Shown: positions 1-9,458, numbered from the stretch's first letter. The stretch: DNA of 64,000 nt from Bigelowiella natans CCMP2755 (GCA_000320545.1 ADNK01002621.1:1-64000); one strand, 5' to 3'. Notes: a model not told the origin generated them from the letters alone. Program-made: numbers and translations.

Positions 1-51
1 CTCTCTCTCTCTCTCACTCACTGCCACCCCGCGCGCAAGCGACACCCCCCC

Positions 52-54
<3 letters not shown>

Positions 55-118
<64 letters not shown>
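55..118. repeat. (TA)n microsatellite, intronic; representative of many (TA)n, (GA)n, (CA)n, (CAT)n, (TAC)n and (CAG)n tracts
   Basis: Directly visible. Similar tracts at e.g. 3050-3095, 3221-3278, 15043-15087, 33178-33265, 47066-47145 and 50625-50726. Confidence 0.95.
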
Positions 119-121
<3 letters not shown>

Positions 122-137
122 ATATGGTTGCAGTGAC

Positions 138-1354
138 GTTTCTTGCTGTCCTGCAAACGAGGCGTCAGGTAGATCTTCAGCGGTAGCCGATGAGCGGACA
201 GCTAGGGCAGCATTTTCATCCCCCCCCGTCACACTCTCCCAGCTCTCCAGCATAGCGCGTTCCAATTCCGGGGAGAAGGGGGTGGCAAGGATCTTATCTC
301 GGATGTACTTGCCCGTCTCTTGTAGCTTTCGTACGTCTGTGTACACCTCTGGGTTCTGGAGAAGAGTGTCGATCTCTTCCGCTAATCCACTTTGCGCCAG
401 GAACAATCGGTATCTATATAAGGAAGGAAGGAAGGAAAGAGAGAGAGGTGTAAAAGAGGGGATGTATGGTGGTGATGGTGATGGTGATGGTGATGGTGAT
501 AGTGATGGCTGTGGGAATACACCCCCCCCCTCCTCTCCCCCTTTCTCTATGTGTGCTGTCATCGTTTTCCTCCTCCTCCTCCTCCTGCTGCTGCTGCTGC
601 TGCTGCTGCTGTGTAAGATATTGTTTTTTTGAGTAGTACGCGTGTGCCGTGGTGCTGAAGCCTCCTGGGACTGGTACATCGGCTGATGCAAGCTCACTGA
701 TCATCTCGCCAAGACTTGCGCTCTTTCCCCCAACGTACTCTACATCATTGTTATTCAACTGCTCGAGGGGGATGCAGAAGGCTGTTGCCTTCGCTACTGA
801 AACGCCCTCCTGTGCAGCTGTTGATCGTGCTCGCCATGGTGCTGTCCGTTGGGGTTGGTTGATGGGATTGGGGAAGAATGGCTGCTGCTGCTGCTGCTGC
901 TGCTTCTGCTTGGAGTCTAACGATTGATAGAGACCGTTCGTAGGCGCTCCAAAAAACATCCTTCTTGTATTCTGATGGGGGAAGCTGCTGATACTACGTC
1001 CTCTGGTTGTTCCGGAAGTAGTAGCACTTCCTAGGAAGGAGGAATAGGTGACATATATGTGGCCGGTCGAGATGATGGTGATGATGATGATTATGCTGAT
1101 GAAGTTGTTGATGATGATTATGACTAAAAGCCGGGAGATGAAAAGCCCATGCAATGGCAACAGCATAGCAACGACCCATTTCCTGGTTGTGAGCAGTGCT
1201 TACATGTATTGTTATCATCGGTTTCACTCCACGGCAATACCATACCTAGTAGCTCTTGTGGGCCTGTGGGTTGAAGGAGTAACACAGCAATGCCGAATAG
1301 CGCCGCCACGAAAGGCACCAGATTCAAGCTGCTTCTTTGGTGACGTAATCGCAT
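138..1354 (-). CDS. ppsA: Phosphoenolpyruvate synthase (pyruvate,water dikinase), 5' part, with bipartite signal+transit leader; gene continues past the window start
   Basis: Exons ~1354-1246, 1030-640 and 413-138 splice in frame at GT-AG. They give [27 protein letters not shown]..., then [29 protein letters not shown] and [22 protein letters not shown], which are PpsA nucleotide-binding-domain motifs. Confidence 0.92.
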
Positions 1355-2238
1355 CTAAAATAATAAAAATCAATTAGGCATGCCTGCGTGTTTTCGTGAA
1401 CAAAGTAACACGTGATTTGAGTCCTGAAATCGAATTTGCGACTCGATACGAAGAGAAAACATGTGCATTGCAGAGGTATATTGTATACATCCATTCAAGA
1501 TCCTCAAAAGCAAATCTGTCCCGCACGATGAGCACGATGACAAACGAGCCGACACACACACGCGCAGCACACAGTAACACATGCAAAAATCCATACGGTA
1601 TTTTATCGATAACATTCCCCGCCCGGGAGAAAATGCTTCAACAGATCAATGTGAATCTCGTTTACAATGTACAATGTCCACAGAAAGAGAGCGCGATAAT
1701 ACCATGTGAGGAAAAGGAAGCGAACTGCGGATGCTGCTTTCGGATAATGAGGTCGGGCGTGCGCGCCAGAAAAGTCAGAGCGAACTTCCGGAGAGTATCT
1801 GCCGATTTTCACCGAAATCCCTTTCAACTGGGCGCTGCGACATCCAAAAACACGCGCAAATATCGGAGAAACCCGTACTCTCACACGATCTCTGGCGGAT
1901 AATTTTTCCGAACCAGCACAATGATTCTCGAGGTGGGATGGTGTGAAAAGCGCAGGAGGGTTCCACCTCTTAAAAGCAAAGAAGTTGCCGAATTTACATG
2001 GGAATTCGCCCAAAACCATCCGGAGACAGTGCTACCCCTTCTTTTACATCTCGGTCGAAACGCAGGGGATTTTGTTTGGATTTGCTCTGAAACGGCAGGA
2101 TGTGATGGTACTTGCGGAAGAAACCGCTTCTCTTGTATTGGACGGTGATTCATGATCGATTCAGGTGGGTGGCCGTGTGGTCTTGGTCGGCTCGAATTCC
2201 TGCCCAGCGCGATCATCTAAACAGCCACGCCCGCCAGC
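1355..2238. promoter_or_regulatory. Putative bidirectional promoter between PEP synthase and its regulator
   Basis: About 880 bp between divergent ATGs at 1354(-) and 2239(+). No microsatellites and no recognisable protein. Confidence 0.5.
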
Positions 2239-2719
2239 ATGGCGGCACAGCTCCCGATGCAACTGTGTGTGCGACAAGTTTGCTTCCTGGCCATGATTCT
2301 GGCCTTGAGCGGCCAACAGCTCTTCTCCGTAAAGAAGATCTCTACGAGCTTCCCAATTCGTAGTCGCTATGTTCCGAGTCGTCCCAGTCGATTACGCCAT
2401 TTCCCTTCGCTTATTGCCCAAAATCTCGTTCGGCGGCCGTATGGCCCAAGCTGCCAAGCCCTGAGGGAGAATCATGTCCTTTAAACCGTGAACCGTAGCG
2501 CACTTGCATCATTTTCATATCCATAATTCCTACACCTCTGGCATCATCATCATCATCCTGTATTCGTTGTGTGAAAATAGGAGGAGGAGGAGGAGGGCAC
2601 GAAGATCGTCAAGGTGGAGGACAGCGTTCCTGTCGAGCCTGCTAAGGAGAAGACATCGTACCTAAAGGTGGTATTAGAATAATACACTTAATGGCGAGGA
2701 AAGAAGAGAGGAAAGGCGT

Positions 2720-2752
<33 letters not shown>

Positions 2753-3058
2753 GTAGGTGGCGATGCTGATATAGAGTGATTTCGATATCTTGAATGAAAT
2801 TGAACATATCTTACCACATCTTGATGCTCCGCCTGCATCTTCACTGGTACAAAAGCAAGCTTAAGCATTATTAAATGGGGGGTGTGTACCTAGGGAGGGA
2901 GGGGATAGGGTACAGCAGGGTTTCCTCATCACGAATGGCGAACAATATACACGTGAAGGCACGATTGAGGGCGAAACTTTGTAGCCTGAAGGAGATCGTC
3001 GCCTTTCAGAAAGTCCCTGATGGCCTCGATGAGGTATTATGCACGCACGCACACACAC

Positions 3059-3098
<40 letters not shown>

Positions 3099-3219
3099 GT
3101 TGCATATATTGTATTTGTGAAATATCAAGCACCTGAATCCGGAGAGGCCATGTATACAAATACAAATACAAAGTGAAATCGTGTGTGGCAAATACGATGC
3201 AGAGAGAGAAGGAGAGGCA

Positions 3220-3284
<65 letters not shown>

Positions 3285-3923
3285 TGCTAAATACAACCTA
3301 CTAGGTAATAGATAAGATGCGGCTGCACAATGTACCCCAAGGGACTCGTATTTTCCAACAAGGAGAGGCTGGCGATCGGATGTAGTATTAAGTACCAGCG
3401 GACAGACAGAGAGACCACCACACCTAAGAATAGAATTCTTGTCAATAAGACGCTCGTGTAGCACCTAAAAAAGTCTTTCTCCCCCCCCACCCCCCCTCTA
3501 TGTGATGTGTGGTGTGTGTGTGTGTGTTTGTATGTGTGCAAATGTGCATTCTTTAATGACCGAAACTAAGGTACATCATCGAGTCGGGTGCTGTGGAGAT
3601 CATGAAGTCCGAAAACCCTGCTGGTGATAAGATAAATGAATAGATGATTGAAAATAACAGATTGGTAGTCACTACCTTCAACGTTATGATTGCCCAGTGA
3701 TAGCATAATTCTCACAATACATTACTCACTTCCCCAATGCATGCCAGACTGCAGCTTCGAATCATATTAATAAGCAAATGGTGATTCTGATTACTCCTCA
3801 TAATTTCTTCATGTGCAGCACCGGGAGAGAAGGAAGTGAGAGTTGGGTCGTATCAACCTGGTAGTTTCTAATCCATCATCCTTCGCTCATAATAATCAGC
3901 ATCATCACACGATGACTACTACG

Positions 3924-3955
<32 letters not shown>

Positions 3956-4364
3956 AACTACTGATGCTGGTGATGTGCAGGAGAATGTGTGGGTCATCTC
4001 TCCCTCCTAGATTCTCGACCCAGGGCTGCAAGTGCCGTGGTGACCAAGGTACCTGCTGCTCAGTGTGAATGATTCTCATCGTTGCTCGACTAGAAGAAGT
4101 TCTAAGAATTAAAGAGAGGATGAGGACATGTTGCGCCAATACATGCGGTTTCGGGAGAAGATCGCCGTTGTGCGGAAGAGTAACCTGAGTGCCCATGCAT
4201 GCGACTGTGTTTGCATTTTGATCAATAGAGATGTGTGAATGTACGTGAAAGGAATCTGTGCTATGGTCACTTGATCGAAAGACTTTGCAAGACTTTATGG
4301 CGGGAGGCGTTGATATGGTATTCACTTGTCGCTCATCATGATTATGCGACTAGTACATAATAAC

Positions 4365-4402
<38 letters not shown>

Positions 4403-4443
4403 TACCGACACCCACTCCTTTCACTATCAATATCACCACCACC

Positions 4444-4477
<34 letters not shown>

Positions 4478-4609
4478 CCATCTCCCAGACGTATGAGGAG
4501 AGCGAGGACGACATCTGTGTGCTGCCACGAGAGGTGTTTGTCATCTCAGACTCAACGGGAGAAAGTGCTGTCAGCGCGGTCTTTAGATAGACAATAGATA
4601 CAGCGAGAA

Positions 4610-4650
<41 letters not shown>

Positions 4651-6025
4651 GAATGAGTATCATCATCGAGACAACGTTGTGCGTGCGTGCACTCATATGG
4701 GAGCCATGATTGTGCAGTTGTAAACTGAAGGGCCGTCGCAAGTGTAAGTAGTTTTGATGTTGTCTTTCTGGGCGTCCTCTCCCTTCTTCAAGGTACGAAA
4801 GTGTATCATGCAATTCACCCACTGCGACGCCTGGGAGATGTGCAATATCGTCACCTACCGCTTTGTGAACTCGAAGCAGCAAATAAAGCACGTAGCAGAG
4901 CAGGTAACACACCAAGAAGGCCACTAAAGAAAGGAGAGGGAAAACGATAAACTAAAGACTATCCATCTGGATGCAGGCCGATCGAAGGGACGCCATCATT
5001 GTGTACACCATCGTGGATGCTGCCAACAAACAGGTTTGATGTGGGGAGGAGGAGGAGGAGGAATAGTCTGCAATTTTTAACTTGTTCGTTGTTTAAAAAT
5101 ACATAATAATGATAGTTATTAAAATAGCAATACAAAACAATCAAAACAAACATAATTTTAACAACAATAGGGATATGATAGTGATAAATAATAATAATAA
5201 AAACAACGATGCTGTTGGTTAGTTTCTTGAGGAGGAGGCATCGAAGCGCAACGTATCTCTCGTGGACTTGTAATACCGGCCATTCATCGATTCTACGACA
5301 ATAATAAAAGAGGAGGAGGAGGAGGAGACTATCGCACCACCACCCCCACCCTTTTCGCTTCCTCCATCGTTTTTCCTTTCACACAATCACGAATGAATAA
5401 AGCAGCAGATGATGAGATGGGCAAGGGATGAGGATGTGACCCCCCCATTTCAATGCAGTTGATCCTTCAAGGAATTTGCTAATCATTGATTGATGTCGCT
5501 GCAAGCTAAGATACTCGTATATCACATCATGAAAGATACGGGCCTCTCATATCGACGTTCGAAACGGCTTTTGGAACCAAAATAACTGGAAAGCCTGGTA
5601 GTTTGTTATTGCTAGTGTTGCCTTCATTCATTCGTAGCTCTTGCCATGCGTAGTAACCACCTTTCTTCTGACCAGTCTTAACAACTGCTGAGCCTCTGTT
5701 TGTTTTATCATGTGTTGTGATCTTTGTTTAGGAAGGAAACAGCCTGTAGATGAGAGCTACATGGACCTCATGGATTGCATTGAGTATATAGTGCTAGAAT
5801 TGTCGCTGATGCTGCTGTTGTTATTGTTGTCACATCCTGAGATTTTCCATAATTGCTTTCGGCCTAAGGTACACAAGGCGTATGGATGATGGCATTAACC
5901 CTCGTGAATGGGACGAAGCTGATCTAATCATTGTGGGGCCAAGCCGAGCAGGTGGCGGTGGAGGAGATGTTGACTGTATAAAATGACATCAGCTTTCTAC
6001 AGCTCATATACGCACAGCCAGACGC

Positions 6026-6069
<44 letters not shown>

Positions 6070-6393
6070 TACCCCCGATTATCCAATTTCTTTCTGTTTG
6101 TGATCCTTTCCATTAATGATCAGGAAAAACTCCACTGAGCTTCTACCTAGGGCTGCGCGGCTTTAAAGTCGCAAACTATCCCATCGTATGTTTTTCACCC
6201 ATTGATCAACACTTTACACCACCATCTCATCCTGATGTTGTCGTTGTCATCATCATTCTCAGGTTATAGGAGAAGATCCCCCCCCTGAACTGTTTGAGTG
6301 GCCTGAGAAGGTCTTCATCGCATAAAGTGGTGGTGATTAGAAGAGGAGGGAAGAAATAGATAGAGAAAGAATTAAAGGGAGAGGGGGGGGAGA

Positions 6394-6435
<42 letters not shown>

Positions 6436-6875
6436 CATTGTCTTATTTTGCTTGATCGCTACTTCCTCAGGTGATAGCTCTGACGATTCAGCCTGAGAGG
6501 TTGTCCTTCATCCGCCAACAACGAATGAGGCAGTTCGGACGGTAAGCTGTATTGCGATCGATCACCTTGTAATTCCGCGTCACTTTTTTCAATTTGTATC
6601 CCTGCCCCCCTCTGATGCTTAGCTCCAAATTCTTATATATTCTCAAAAATGCTGCATCATCGCCGTGTAGGTCCGAATCAACATACTCGAACATCAATGA
6701 AGTGAGGCAGGAGATGAACGAGATTGAGCGTTTCTACAAGCGTAACCCACGGTGGTTCGTCATCGACACCACCAACTCTGGGCTTGAAGAGACCGCCGGA
6801 GAAATATTTCGCCATATAGATATGCAATCTGGAAGGGACAACATTATGCCTGCTCAGATGCGGGGATTCATTTAG
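2239..6875 (+). CDS. ppsR: PEP synthase/PPDK regulatory kinase-pyrophosphorylase (DUF299; PSRP/PDRP) with N-terminal cNMP-binding domain and bipartite leader
   Basis: Many short exons. Leader MAAQLPMQLCVRQVCFLAMILALS.... cNMP domain IFQQGEAGDRMYIIESGAVEI..GECVGHLSLLDSRPRAASAVV..LWSLDRKT (3305-4317). DUF299 motifs VFVISDSTGESA (~4530), [33 protein letters not shown] (5870-6160), KVANYP, IALTIQPERLSFIRQQR and VIDTTNSGLEETA. Stop at 6875. Confidence 0.9.
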
Positions 6876-7549
6876 TGCGAGTGTGAACGTGCATCGGTCA
6901 ATTAATAAATAATAGCGTTCATTACATCATTTGAGCGTGCTATACAGACTAAGTTGTTTGTGCTGTGCTGTCTACAACTACAACTGACTGTGTGGCCGTA
7001 AGCACTATCATTAGCAGCCAAACTACCTCGTGGCCCGATTCGCATTGTTAGGCCAAGCTAGCAAGGCAATACGATTATAACCAATTGACGCAGCGTACGC
7101 TATGTAATAGTCAATGCGGCCATGTCTAATGCACTAAGACAGATGTAATCAATTATTAAATTGTAAATTAAATTTGCTCAACATATAGTCTAATGCACTA
7201 AGGAAATTTGAATTCACCGTATCGTAAGCATGATCTTGCTAGATCTACAGCATCAATGCAGAAAGCCATGCCATGAGTCTAGATGTCGTTATTTATCAAC
7301 GCAATAACATGCGTCATTCATTGAGCGCATCGAGTAGTATTAGAGTAGTCTAGTAGTGCGCTGCGGCATGCTAGCATGCATGGCTGTTCTCCGGCATTCC
7401 TCGCATAATGTAGGATTTCATCTATGTAATCATTCTGTGTTTGTCCCACGGCTGCGGTATTTTTTATGATGGACCGTGATTACATGTATATTTGGATCAT
7501 CGTCATCATTATCATTCATCGGATGTTACTGGTATTGCTCATCACCCAT

Positions 7550-9458
7550 CTACCGTGTGCCAGCGAATGGCTGCCATTGGAAACCACCGTCTACAACACC
7601 TGGCATCTGTTTGGGTAGGAACGCATTGGCGTTGGCCTGAATTTCGCGCGGATGGTGCGCAAATGAGCACTGCTCTCCCCGTACACATTTTCCCTGCTGG
7701 AAGTAGATGCACATCTTGCGCTTGTAAGGGACGCCGGTGGGGCGATAGGGCTGATTTCTTGTGTGACCGAGAACGTCAAGTGCCACTCGGATGGGTCGGT
7801 AGTACAAGAGAGTGCCGTCGAGCTTCACAGCTGCTTGCGCACCTATTAGAAGGAGGCAATATGTCAAGACATGAGCTAAAAAGAGTTGAAAAATTGAGTA
7901 TTATCACGTCGGCACGCTGTCAATTTCTGTACACGACCAAGAAACGCACAGGCTGATCATTGAAAAATAATATCATCTAGTACCTTCTTCCGAGTCAAAC
8001 TCCATGAAGCAGATGCCCCTATGTGGCGCCTGCTGCTGCTGCATCATCGCGCCAGGCATCGGCCGCTTCCGCATGTTGTTTTTGGGCATGTTGGCGTCGA
8101 CAATCCGCCCGCACTGCTTAAATACAGTCCTAACATCCGAGAGCTTCGCTTCGAAAGGGATATTACTAAATGATAGCCAAAAATCAAGTATCAGCTGGGA
8201 AATTTGTTCTTCTATTACGACAACGACGACGATTACTACCACTACCACTACTGCTACCACCTTATAAAGACGTGTCGTTTGGTGGTTTGTGGCTGTTGGG
8301 GTGGGACAGGAATGCCCCCATATTGACCACTTGCTACAGCGGCTTGATGTGCGGCCGCAGCACGCGCAGCTGCTGCATTTATAGCAGCCATTCGTGCAGC
8401 ATTGGCGGCTTCTGATTATTTTTCAAAAGTGAGAGCCATCAGATGACAGGTATGAGACAGACACTAATTTATCTGTACACACACTCACACTCACACCCAC
8501 ACAATAATGTGTTTAAATATGTATGTGCGTGCTAAATAATGCCTTCTTCAAAACCAATATGATGAGACAGAACAGAATCATATACAACGCGAGGATCAAG
8601 TCTAACCCATTGCCGCTTTCTTTGCGTTTGCAGCCTGCAGTTCTTTTTCTTTCCGTTCTCTTTCCGCGGCCTCACGTTTCGCCTTTTCTTCAGCTTCTTT
8701 CCTTGCCTTCTCGGCATCTCGCTCGGCCTTCTTCATGACCTGCGATTTCTCCTCCCCCTCTATCCATCCTACCTCAAGCGCAGCTAAGCTCTTGCCCCCT
8801 ACCAGCCTACGGATCTTGTGGAGGCTCTTGTCGTCATCAACAGTAGTTGGGGCAGCAGTGACGGCGTTCCCATCAGCTTTCGTGTCCCCTTCTCCCCCCT
8901 CCTCTTTGCTGCTGCTACGGCTACTCCCATCAGCTTTTGTGTCCCCTCCTCCCTCCTTTGCAGAGGCTTCCGCCGCAACCTTTCAAAATTCAGAGTAGGG
9001 ATAATCAATCGATGTAACTAACGGAAAAGATTCGAGTACAGGATGAAATCCAATTTTGTGAGATTGTAGCCCTCACAAACAAATTACTACTTTGCCATCG
9101 CCATCGGTACTACTGGAGGCGGAGACGGGATCCTTGTGCTTCTTCTTATGCGTGTCCGCAAAGCAAACAACACAAAAGTAGAGCTTGCAGTCCTTGCAGA
9201 AAAGATCTGCATCCCGCTCACCATTACAATTTCTGCATATCATCTCGCCAAAGTCTCCACCCTACGAGTATTTGTGCAGAGATAAGAAAATATGCGCAGT
9301 CGTCTATTATCTTCAATTTATACCTCTCCATCCATGTTATTGCCTTGTCCACCCTCCTCTCCAGGATCCTGGGAGTCAGAATCTTCGTCCGAGTCGCTGA
9401 CTTCCCATTTTTTCTTAACCACGGCGGTTTTCTGCCGCTTTCTCATAAAGAAAGACAT
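7550..9458 (-). CDS. RNA-binding protein: B-box-like Zn finger + coiled region + RRM + CCCH zinc finger
   Basis: CRNC..FCKDCKLYFCVVCFADTH (~9150-9240). RRM VFISNIPFEA...RGICFMEFDSEEGAQAAVKLDG. CCCH finger YKRKMCIYFQQGKCVRGEQCSFAH. Stop at 7550. Confidence 0.8.

Follow-up and report, generated by a model that had tools for sequence, protein, structure and literature searches.

The nuclear genome of the chlorarachniophyte Bigelowiella natans carries, at the start of one of its contigs, two genes that lie head-to-head. On the minus strand is what is, by sequence, a PpsA-type phosphoenolpyruvate (PEP) synthase; on the plus strand is a regulator in which a cyclic-nucleotide-binding (CNB) domain is joined to a DUF299 kinase/pyrophosphorylase, a sensor-fused form of the known family of PEP synthase regulatory proteins (PSRP) and pyruvate, phosphate dikinase (PPDK) regulatory proteins (PDRP). 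Sensor and DUF299 domain are encoded by one transcript and form one polypeptide, transcription of the two genes diverges from a common region of about 0.4 kb, and their head-to-head linkage is conserved across two chlorarachniophyte genera. The window that we analysed comprises positions 1-64000 of contig C1116 (nuclear assembly of 91.4 Mb in 3736 contigs). RNA evidence over positions 950-6900 came from three runs of transcriptome contigs and one of raw RNA-seq, and the anatomy of the gene pair (Table 1) is nearly certain.

The regulator gene has 19 exons with GT..AG borders, extending from an ATG at 2239 to a stop codon at 6873-6875; removal of its 18 introns leaves an uninterrupted open reading frame (ORF) of 1593 nt, encoding 530 amino acids (aa). 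Thirteen introns were taken from listed plus-strand GT..AG joints in the RNA and one from a contig piece, and introns 5-8 were placed from sequence. RNA contigs that run from exon 1 (2159-2475) through exon 2 to 4491-4577 tie the sensor exons to the DUF299 exons, and X3 record 8 among them goes on into 4792-4899. A 1090-nt contig holds 386 nt between 2664 and 4491, exactly the length predicted by the model. The spliced model is also identical to a public protein, JGI Bigna1 90566 (here P0133, listed under EP00466_Bigelowiella_natans), whose protein cluster includes an MMETSP transcript ORF of 531 aa. P0133 was reached through a search with the last exon, which returned a relative (P0001), and then through protein clusters; later searches used P0133 or its relatives. 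A first-pass annotation of the window had proposed the fusion and named a single transcript across 4317-4489 as the check on it; the RNA contigs and the identity to the JGI model provide this, and the alternative of separate transcripts fails. The 3' untranslated region (UTR) of the regulator extends past 6900.

Pfam analysis of the full protein confirmed both halves of the fusion, with a cNMP_binding domain (PF00027) at aa 141-230 (E = 3.8e-19; 68.9 bits vs. a cut-off of 27.5) and a Kinase-PPPase domain (PF03618, DUF299) at aa 251-508 (E = 2e-76; 257.5 bits vs. 23.5) that spans profile positions 1-255 of 256. The latter contains the motif SDSTGES at 255-261 and the P-loop GPSRAGKTP at 398-406, and among 46 relatives no variation occurs at S255, D256, G259, S400, R401, K404, T405 or P406. 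The protein scores 257 bits against the PPDK/PEPS-regulator subfamily NF003742, above the cut-off of 225, and 145.3 bits against the enterobacterial PpsR equivalog NF049928, below the cut-off of 350; it belongs to the wider subfamily and not to the equivalog. In a genome-wide profile scan, the PF03618 exons at 5867-6806 (+) were the only DUF299 locus. In the AlphaFold2 (AF2) model, the CNB and DUF299 domains are both modelled with confidence, whereas the leader (aa 1-85) is disordered and the linker (236-242) weak. A Foldseek search with this model returned maize PDRP (5D0N; E = 1.1e-20, TM 0.78, 29% identity) as well as the CNB domains of PKA, PKG and CRP, which match the CNB part at TM up to 0.85, so that the sensor has the beta-roll fold as well as the Pfam match. 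Two scans at the DNA level missed the sensor. Ten open segments scanned exon by exon with Pfam gave no cNMP domain, and a genome-wide six-frame scan with PF00027 gave 61 matches, none on C1116; both are false negatives, the cNMP exons being only 14-26 codons long.

The partner gene is split over three contigs with two assembly gaps (C1118:26701-27870, C1117:1-1652 and window 1-1354), and the window holds just its first third. In an alignment with E. coli PpsA (53-75% identity), residues 15-149 correspond to the window, with coding exon 3 (138-413) the counterpart of residues 56-149, residues 164-345 to C1117 and residues 562-790 to C1118. A six-frame Pfam scan located PPDK_N exons at 131-415 and 564-740 on the minus strand and others on C1117, and the end of C1118 carries PEP-utilizers_C exons; the PPDK_N domain and C-domain are both present across C1116, C1117 and C1118. 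The counterpart of PpsA residues 346-561, including the phospho-His (PEP-utilizers) domain, was not found in the B. natans assembly. Every exon is closer by far to the PEP synthase models NF005057 and TIGR01418 than to the PPDK model, with four exons matching NF005057 at per-exon E values of about 1e-26 to 2.5e-41, vs. 1.3e-5 at best for PPDK. Minus-strand introns at 1031-1245 and 1355-1702 are seen in the RNA contigs, and the second of these, in the 5' UTR, directly abuts the start codon (ATG 1354). The lower limit of coding exon 3, position 138, is a start coordinate carried over from the first-pass annotation; a GT donor follows it.

The two ATG codons are 884 bp apart, matching the spacer of about 880 bp described for the divergent pair at first pass, and the orientation is, as was also noted then, that of E. 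coli ppsA and ppsR. Much of this spacer is transcribed and spliced because the 5'-UTR intron and exon of the PEP synthase lie in it; in the part between the two transcripts, one run gave trace RNA depth in the bin 1746-1944. Synteny in related algae, suggested earlier as a further check, was found in a second genus: the fusion gene of Amorphochlora is head-to-head with a gene for an 877-aa PEP synthase, both loci being orthologous to the pair in the window. The Amorphochlora enzyme has all of PPDK_N, PEP-utilizers (His domain) and PEP-utilizers_C, and it retains the Thr-x-His motif in GGRTCHAA. In Polarella, no PEP synthase occurs within 10 kb of the fusion gene, and the nearest bacterial DUF299 genes that were checked (Myxococcota) do not adjoin ppsA, so that no donor operon can be named. 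Of the earlier suggestion that the pair was kept or rebuilt in an intron-rich genome, the pair itself is upheld by Amorphochlora, but with no linkage at the DUF299 genes checked in Myxococcota and Polarella, neither retention nor reassembly is established.

The fusion occurs in four other chlorarachniophyte sequences (Lotharella globosa, Amorphochlora amoebiformis and two chlorarachniophyte-like environmental transcripts) and in many dinoflagellate sequences; at about 40% identity it is present in Durusdinium, Polarella and many environmental transcripts. A search with the CNB region alone recovered only chlorarachniophyte orthologues as close relatives, and no source of the sensor was found. 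A DUF299 tree separates the eukaryote-like proteins as a clade (SH-aLRT 96) from bacterial PpsR. In that clade the fusions cluster (SH-aLRT 80) with a few unfused or truncated proteins nested among them, amounting to five label changes. Other unusual architectures are found among the eukaryote-like DUF299 relatives P0004, P0043, P0035, P0037 and P0038; they include a tandem double DUF299 protein (769 aa), a Durusdinium protein combining an ADP-ribosylglycohydrolase domain (PF03747) with DUF299, and proteins extended at the N-terminus by 260-360 aa without a match in Pfam.

Leaders were judged by composition only, i.e., by hydrophobicity and charge. Hydrophobic cores occupy aa 9-23 of the regulator and aa 12-26 of the PEP synthase (mean Kyte-Doolittle value 2.75), and after each core comes a basic stretch rich in Ser and Thr, with 10 K+R vs. 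1 D+E in the regulator and 9 K+R vs. 2 D+E in the PEP synthase. The leader of the regulator is about 80 aa long. This composition agrees with the signal peptide plus transit-like leader assigned to both proteins at first pass, and suggests that both are routed via the endoplasmic reticulum (ER) into the complex plastid.

With moderate confidence, we read the pair as a plastid-routed PEP synthase that would be regulated by a DUF299 protein, with the CNB domain shifting the balance of activities in response to a small ligand. Both proteins would enter the complex plastid through the ER. The DUF299 part would switch PEP synthase off by phosphorylating, with ADP, the Thr next to the catalytic His, and would switch it on again by Pi-dependent dephosphorylation, as does E. 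coli PpsR. The CNB domain would bind the ligand, and its C-helix and the short linker could then shift the balance between the two DUF299 activities. Several observations weigh against this reading. The targeting rests on composition, and a bipartite leader fits the plastid stroma and the periplastidial compartment alike; the Thr-x-His motif is not directly visible in the B. natans enzyme, as the phospho-His domain falls in the assembly gaps; and the inter-domain geometry of the AF2 model is uncertain (pTM 0.45). In the phosphate-binding cassette of the sensor, Gly-Glu has become Gly-His (His196) in B. natans and in all four other chlorarachniophyte sequences, and most fusions of the dinoflagellate clade have Ala (Ser in one) in place of the Glu and Gln, His or Tyr in place of the Arg; the exceptions are P0033, which keeps Glu and Arg, and P0036, which keeps Glu but not Arg.

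These cassette changes underlie the alternative that survives best, to which we assign a sizeable minority of the probability: that the CNB-type domain is no cAMP/cGMP sensor, and either binds another ligand (a nucleoside, AMP or a metabolite) or, with no ligand at all, adds a regulatory or dimerisation function to an ordinary PSRP. In PKA the cassette Glu contacts the ribose 2'-OH, and its uniform replacement by His in the chlorarachniophyte orthologues fits this alternative, as do the dinoflagellate substitutions; since both Glu and Arg are replaced in most of the dinoflagellate relatives, the fusion family as a whole is probably not a canonical cyclic nucleotide binder. The regulatory subunits of trypanosomatid PKA, which likewise have altered cassettes, bind nucleosides and not cAMP. 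Among the five chlorarachniophyte orthologues, the CNB domain is as well conserved (72%) as the catalytic domain (69%), vs. 19% for the leader, which argues that the domain is functional; such strong conservation despite a diverged cassette fits a function that has changed rather than been lost. On the other hand, the closest solved relative of the sensor in sequence is the CNB-A domain of PKA RII-alpha (E = 1.5e-21), a high overall similarity to true cAMP binders. The two cassettes align without gaps, and Arg205 in the Pro-Arg-Ala-Ala-Ser of the alga is aligned with Pro-Arg-Ala-Ala-Thr; the phosphate-binding Arg is kept in the chlorarachniophyte cassette. Moreover, Epac proteins bind cAMP even with Gln in place of that Glu. 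Ligand gating of the regulator is therefore plausible on the sequence evidence, and cAMP or cGMP may be regarded as the leading, though not a secure, candidate ligand; the case for a canonical cyclic nucleotide is about evenly balanced. Of the second-messenger-gated switch envisaged at first pass, the sensor domain is real and has its Arg, but gating is something that we infer, and the cassette is altered at the Glu in B. natans and mostly at both residues in dinoflagellates.

A second alternative keeps the enzyme and its regulator together but places them in the periplastidial compartment, or at another point of the secretory route, instead of the plastid stroma. Periplastidial proteins of chlorarachniophytes likewise use a signal peptide followed by a transit-like peptide. 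The transit-like stretches of both proteins are strongly net positive, however, a property that published work on B. natans links to stromal import. A PEP synthase of the plastid is, in addition, known in centric diatoms (PMC5124317, PMC9292941), and we consider a location outside the stroma unlikely.

With regard to the target, B. natans has two PPDK genes (C691:1254-4755 and C2706:4787-7831), each with its PEP-utilizers_C domain in a single long exon and each with an open frame that begins at the mature domain, without an N-terminal leader. Both PPDKs were previously found to be leaderless and judged cytosolic (Hopkins et al. 2012, PMC3542566). Because both PPDKs lack leaders that the regulator and the PEP synthase possess, PEP synthase is favoured as the substrate, and it is the likely target of the regulator. 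That the regulator is instead a PDRP acting on PPDK, in place of or besides PEP synthase, with the adjacency uninformative, seems quite improbable: it would suit the sole DUF299 gene of a genome with two PPDK genes, a protein that fits the mixed subfamily NF003742 and not the PpsR equivalog (145 bits vs. 350), and a best structural match to maize PDRP, but not PPDK frames that are leaderless in agreement with PMC3542566, a regulator with a leader of its own, or a linkage to PEP synthase kept in two genera.

A broader synthesis, which we regard as doubtful in its entirety, would make the CNB-gated PSRP a ligand-controlled switch on plastid pyruvate-to-PEP conversion in both chlorarachniophytes and dinoflagellates, with a non-canonical ligand in keeping with the diverged cassette, and the gene pair a bacterial neighbourhood that survived transfer to an intron-rich nucleus. 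To our knowledge, PSRP/PDRP regulators are regarded as free-standing proteins that respond to ADP and Pi alone. With a conserved and constrained sensor on such a protein, the pyruvate/PEP node of the complex plastid, where PEP feeds gluconeogenesis and aromatic amino-acid synthesis, would gain a further signalling input. The locus is also a rare enzyme-regulator gene neighbourhood fixed in an intron-rich eukaryotic nucleus, in at least two genera and in the orientation of E. coli ppsA/ppsR. The diverged cassettes provide a natural series for studying ligand change in CNB domains, and recombinant proteins would allow a direct test of the hypothesis. Within the literature available to the search, no paper dealt with a CNB-DUF299 fusion or with the PEP synthase of B. 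natans, which accords with the unfamiliarity of the architecture remarked on at first pass; however, the fusion is already present in public models, as the JGI gene model, and has been annotated automatically in dinoflagellate genomes. The earlier claim is also less novel in that plastid PEP synthase had been described in centric diatoms (PMC5124317, PMC9292941).

Table 1. Features of the divergent gene pair in the window (positions 1-64000 of contig C1116).
Feature	Position	Strand	Evidence
PEP synthase intron to contig end, (TA)n-rich	1..137	-	GT donor after exon end 138; gene continues on C1117
PEP synthase coding exon 3	138..413	-	PPDK_N 32-127, E 5.3e-21; NF005057 2.8e-26; frame-consistent splice model
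PEP synthase coding exon 2	640..1030	-	transit-like peptide and start of mature enzyme; RNA joint 1029>1245 (CT..AC); PPDK_N 2-56
PEP synthase coding exon 1	1246..1354	-	ATG 1354, signal-peptide-like hydrophobic core; RNA contig pieces over 1245-1354; translation
PEP synthase 5'-UTR intron, 348 bp	1355..1702	-	RNA joint 1354>1703, CT..AC, two runs
PEP synthase 5'-UTR exon, upstream end approximate	1703..1745	-	joint at 1703; depth ~36-43 nt in bin 1547-1745
Shared divergent promoter region	1746..2158		RNA depth near zero at 1746-2143 in three runs; regulator contig begins at 2159
Regulator 5' UTR	2159..2238	+	RNA contig pieces begin at 2159 or 2172; 2239 is first in-frame ATG after stop
Exon 1, signal-like core and basic Ser/Arg/Pro-rich transit-like peptide, aa 1-79	2239..2475	+	joint 2475>2581; composition; disordered in AF2
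Exon 2, acidic linker and N-terminal helix, aa 80-108	2581..2667	+	RNA joints shifted to GT..AG
Exon 3, start of cNMP-type domain	2959..3033	+	joint 2664>2956; contig piece ending at 3031
Exon 4, cNMP-type domain	3305..3381	+	contig piece from 3303; joint 3381>3571
Exon 5, beta strands of cNMP-type domain	3571..3623	+	joint 3381>3571; sequence; identity to P0133
Exon 6, cNMP-type domain	3819..3860	+	AG/GT borders from sequence; length match; identity to P0133
Exon 7, phosphate-binding cassette (His196, Arg205)	3981..4048	+	sequence; identity to P0133; PKA RII-alpha cassette alignment
Exon 8, last strand and C-helix of cNMP-type domain	4252..4317	+	sequence placement; identity to P0133
Intron between sensor and DUF299 exons	4318..4488	+	spanned by RNA contigs X1 record 2 and X3 record 8; proteins P0019, P0133, P0134
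Exon 9, acidic linker and first DUF299 strand with SDSTGES	4489..4578	+	contig pieces 4491-4577; joint 4577>4792
Exon 10, DUF299	4793..4903	+	RNA joints, shifted to GT..AG
Exon 11, DUF299	4977..5033	+	RNA joints, shifted to GT..AG
Exon 12, DUF299	5223..5269	+	RNA joints, shifted to GT..AG
Exon 13, DUF299	5536..5597	+	RNA joints, shifted to GT..AG
Exon 14, DUF299	5732..5783	+	RNA joints, shifted to GT..AG
Exon 15, DUF299, including first P-loop residues GPSRA	5869..5951	+	PF03618 positions 121-149; RNA joints
Exon 16, most of P-loop (GKTP)	6124..6185	+	PF03618 positions 148-188; invariant S400, R401, K404, T405, P406
Exon 17, DUF299	6263..6310	+	RNA joints, shifted to GT..AG
Exon 18, DUF299	6471..6541	+	PF03618 positions 186-210; RNA joints
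Exon 19, DUF299 C-terminus and stop	6671..6875	+	PF03618 positions 211-255; contig pieces 6670-6900

Microsatellites are abundant in the introns, as (TA)n, (TG)n/(CA)n and trinucleotide runs (e.g., 53-120, 1065-1130, 2712-2763, 3035-3105), and these repeats recur on many contigs of the genome. The next gene downstream, at 7466-8300 (-), converges on the 3' end of the regulator; it has a CCCH zinc-finger-like motif in an open frame at 7550-7867 and an RRM-like segment at 7973-8260.

Among known systems, E. coli PpsR (YdiA, PSRP) shares with the algal regulator a full-length DUF299 domain (30% identity over 279 residues) with the P-loop and N-terminal motif kept, and ppsR is head-to-head with ppsA, the K-12 spacer being 332 bp. 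PpsR is, however, a 277-aa single-domain protein with neither sensor nor leader, whereas the algal protein scores under the PpsR equivalog cut-off and its gene has 18 introns. The PDRP of maize and Arabidopsis (RP1; PDB 5D0N), which provides the best structural match, is likewise nucleus-encoded and organelle-targeted (for the algal protein, targeting is predicted), but it acts on PPDK, lacks a CNB domain and has a simple transit peptide in place of a bipartite leader. For the enzyme, the nearest parallel is with centric diatoms (Thalassiosira/Cyclotella), in which a PpsA-type enzyme has been assigned to the complex plastid of a secondary alga (PMC5124317, PMC9292941); the diatom lineage is a different one, and no linked CNB-fused regulator has been reported there, although linkage in diatoms was not examined. 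The sensor has the same fold as CNB-A of PKA RII-alpha and a cassette that aligns with it without gaps and keeps Pro-Arg-Ala-Ala-Ser/Thr, but this cassette starts with Gly-His instead of Gly-Glu, and the algal protein has just one CNB domain, attached to an enzyme and not to an inhibitor segment. The mycobacterial cAMP-activated acetyltransferase Pat (NF058543) differs in its unrelated GNAT catalytic domain and in its target, acetyl-CoA synthetase, and the algal regulator, with a weak CNB-level match of 27.6 bits against a cut-off of 460, is not a member of that family. By analogy, Pat nevertheless resembles the algal regulator in design, with an N-terminal CNB domain placed on an enzyme that modifies proteins and thereby switches an enzyme of central metabolism.

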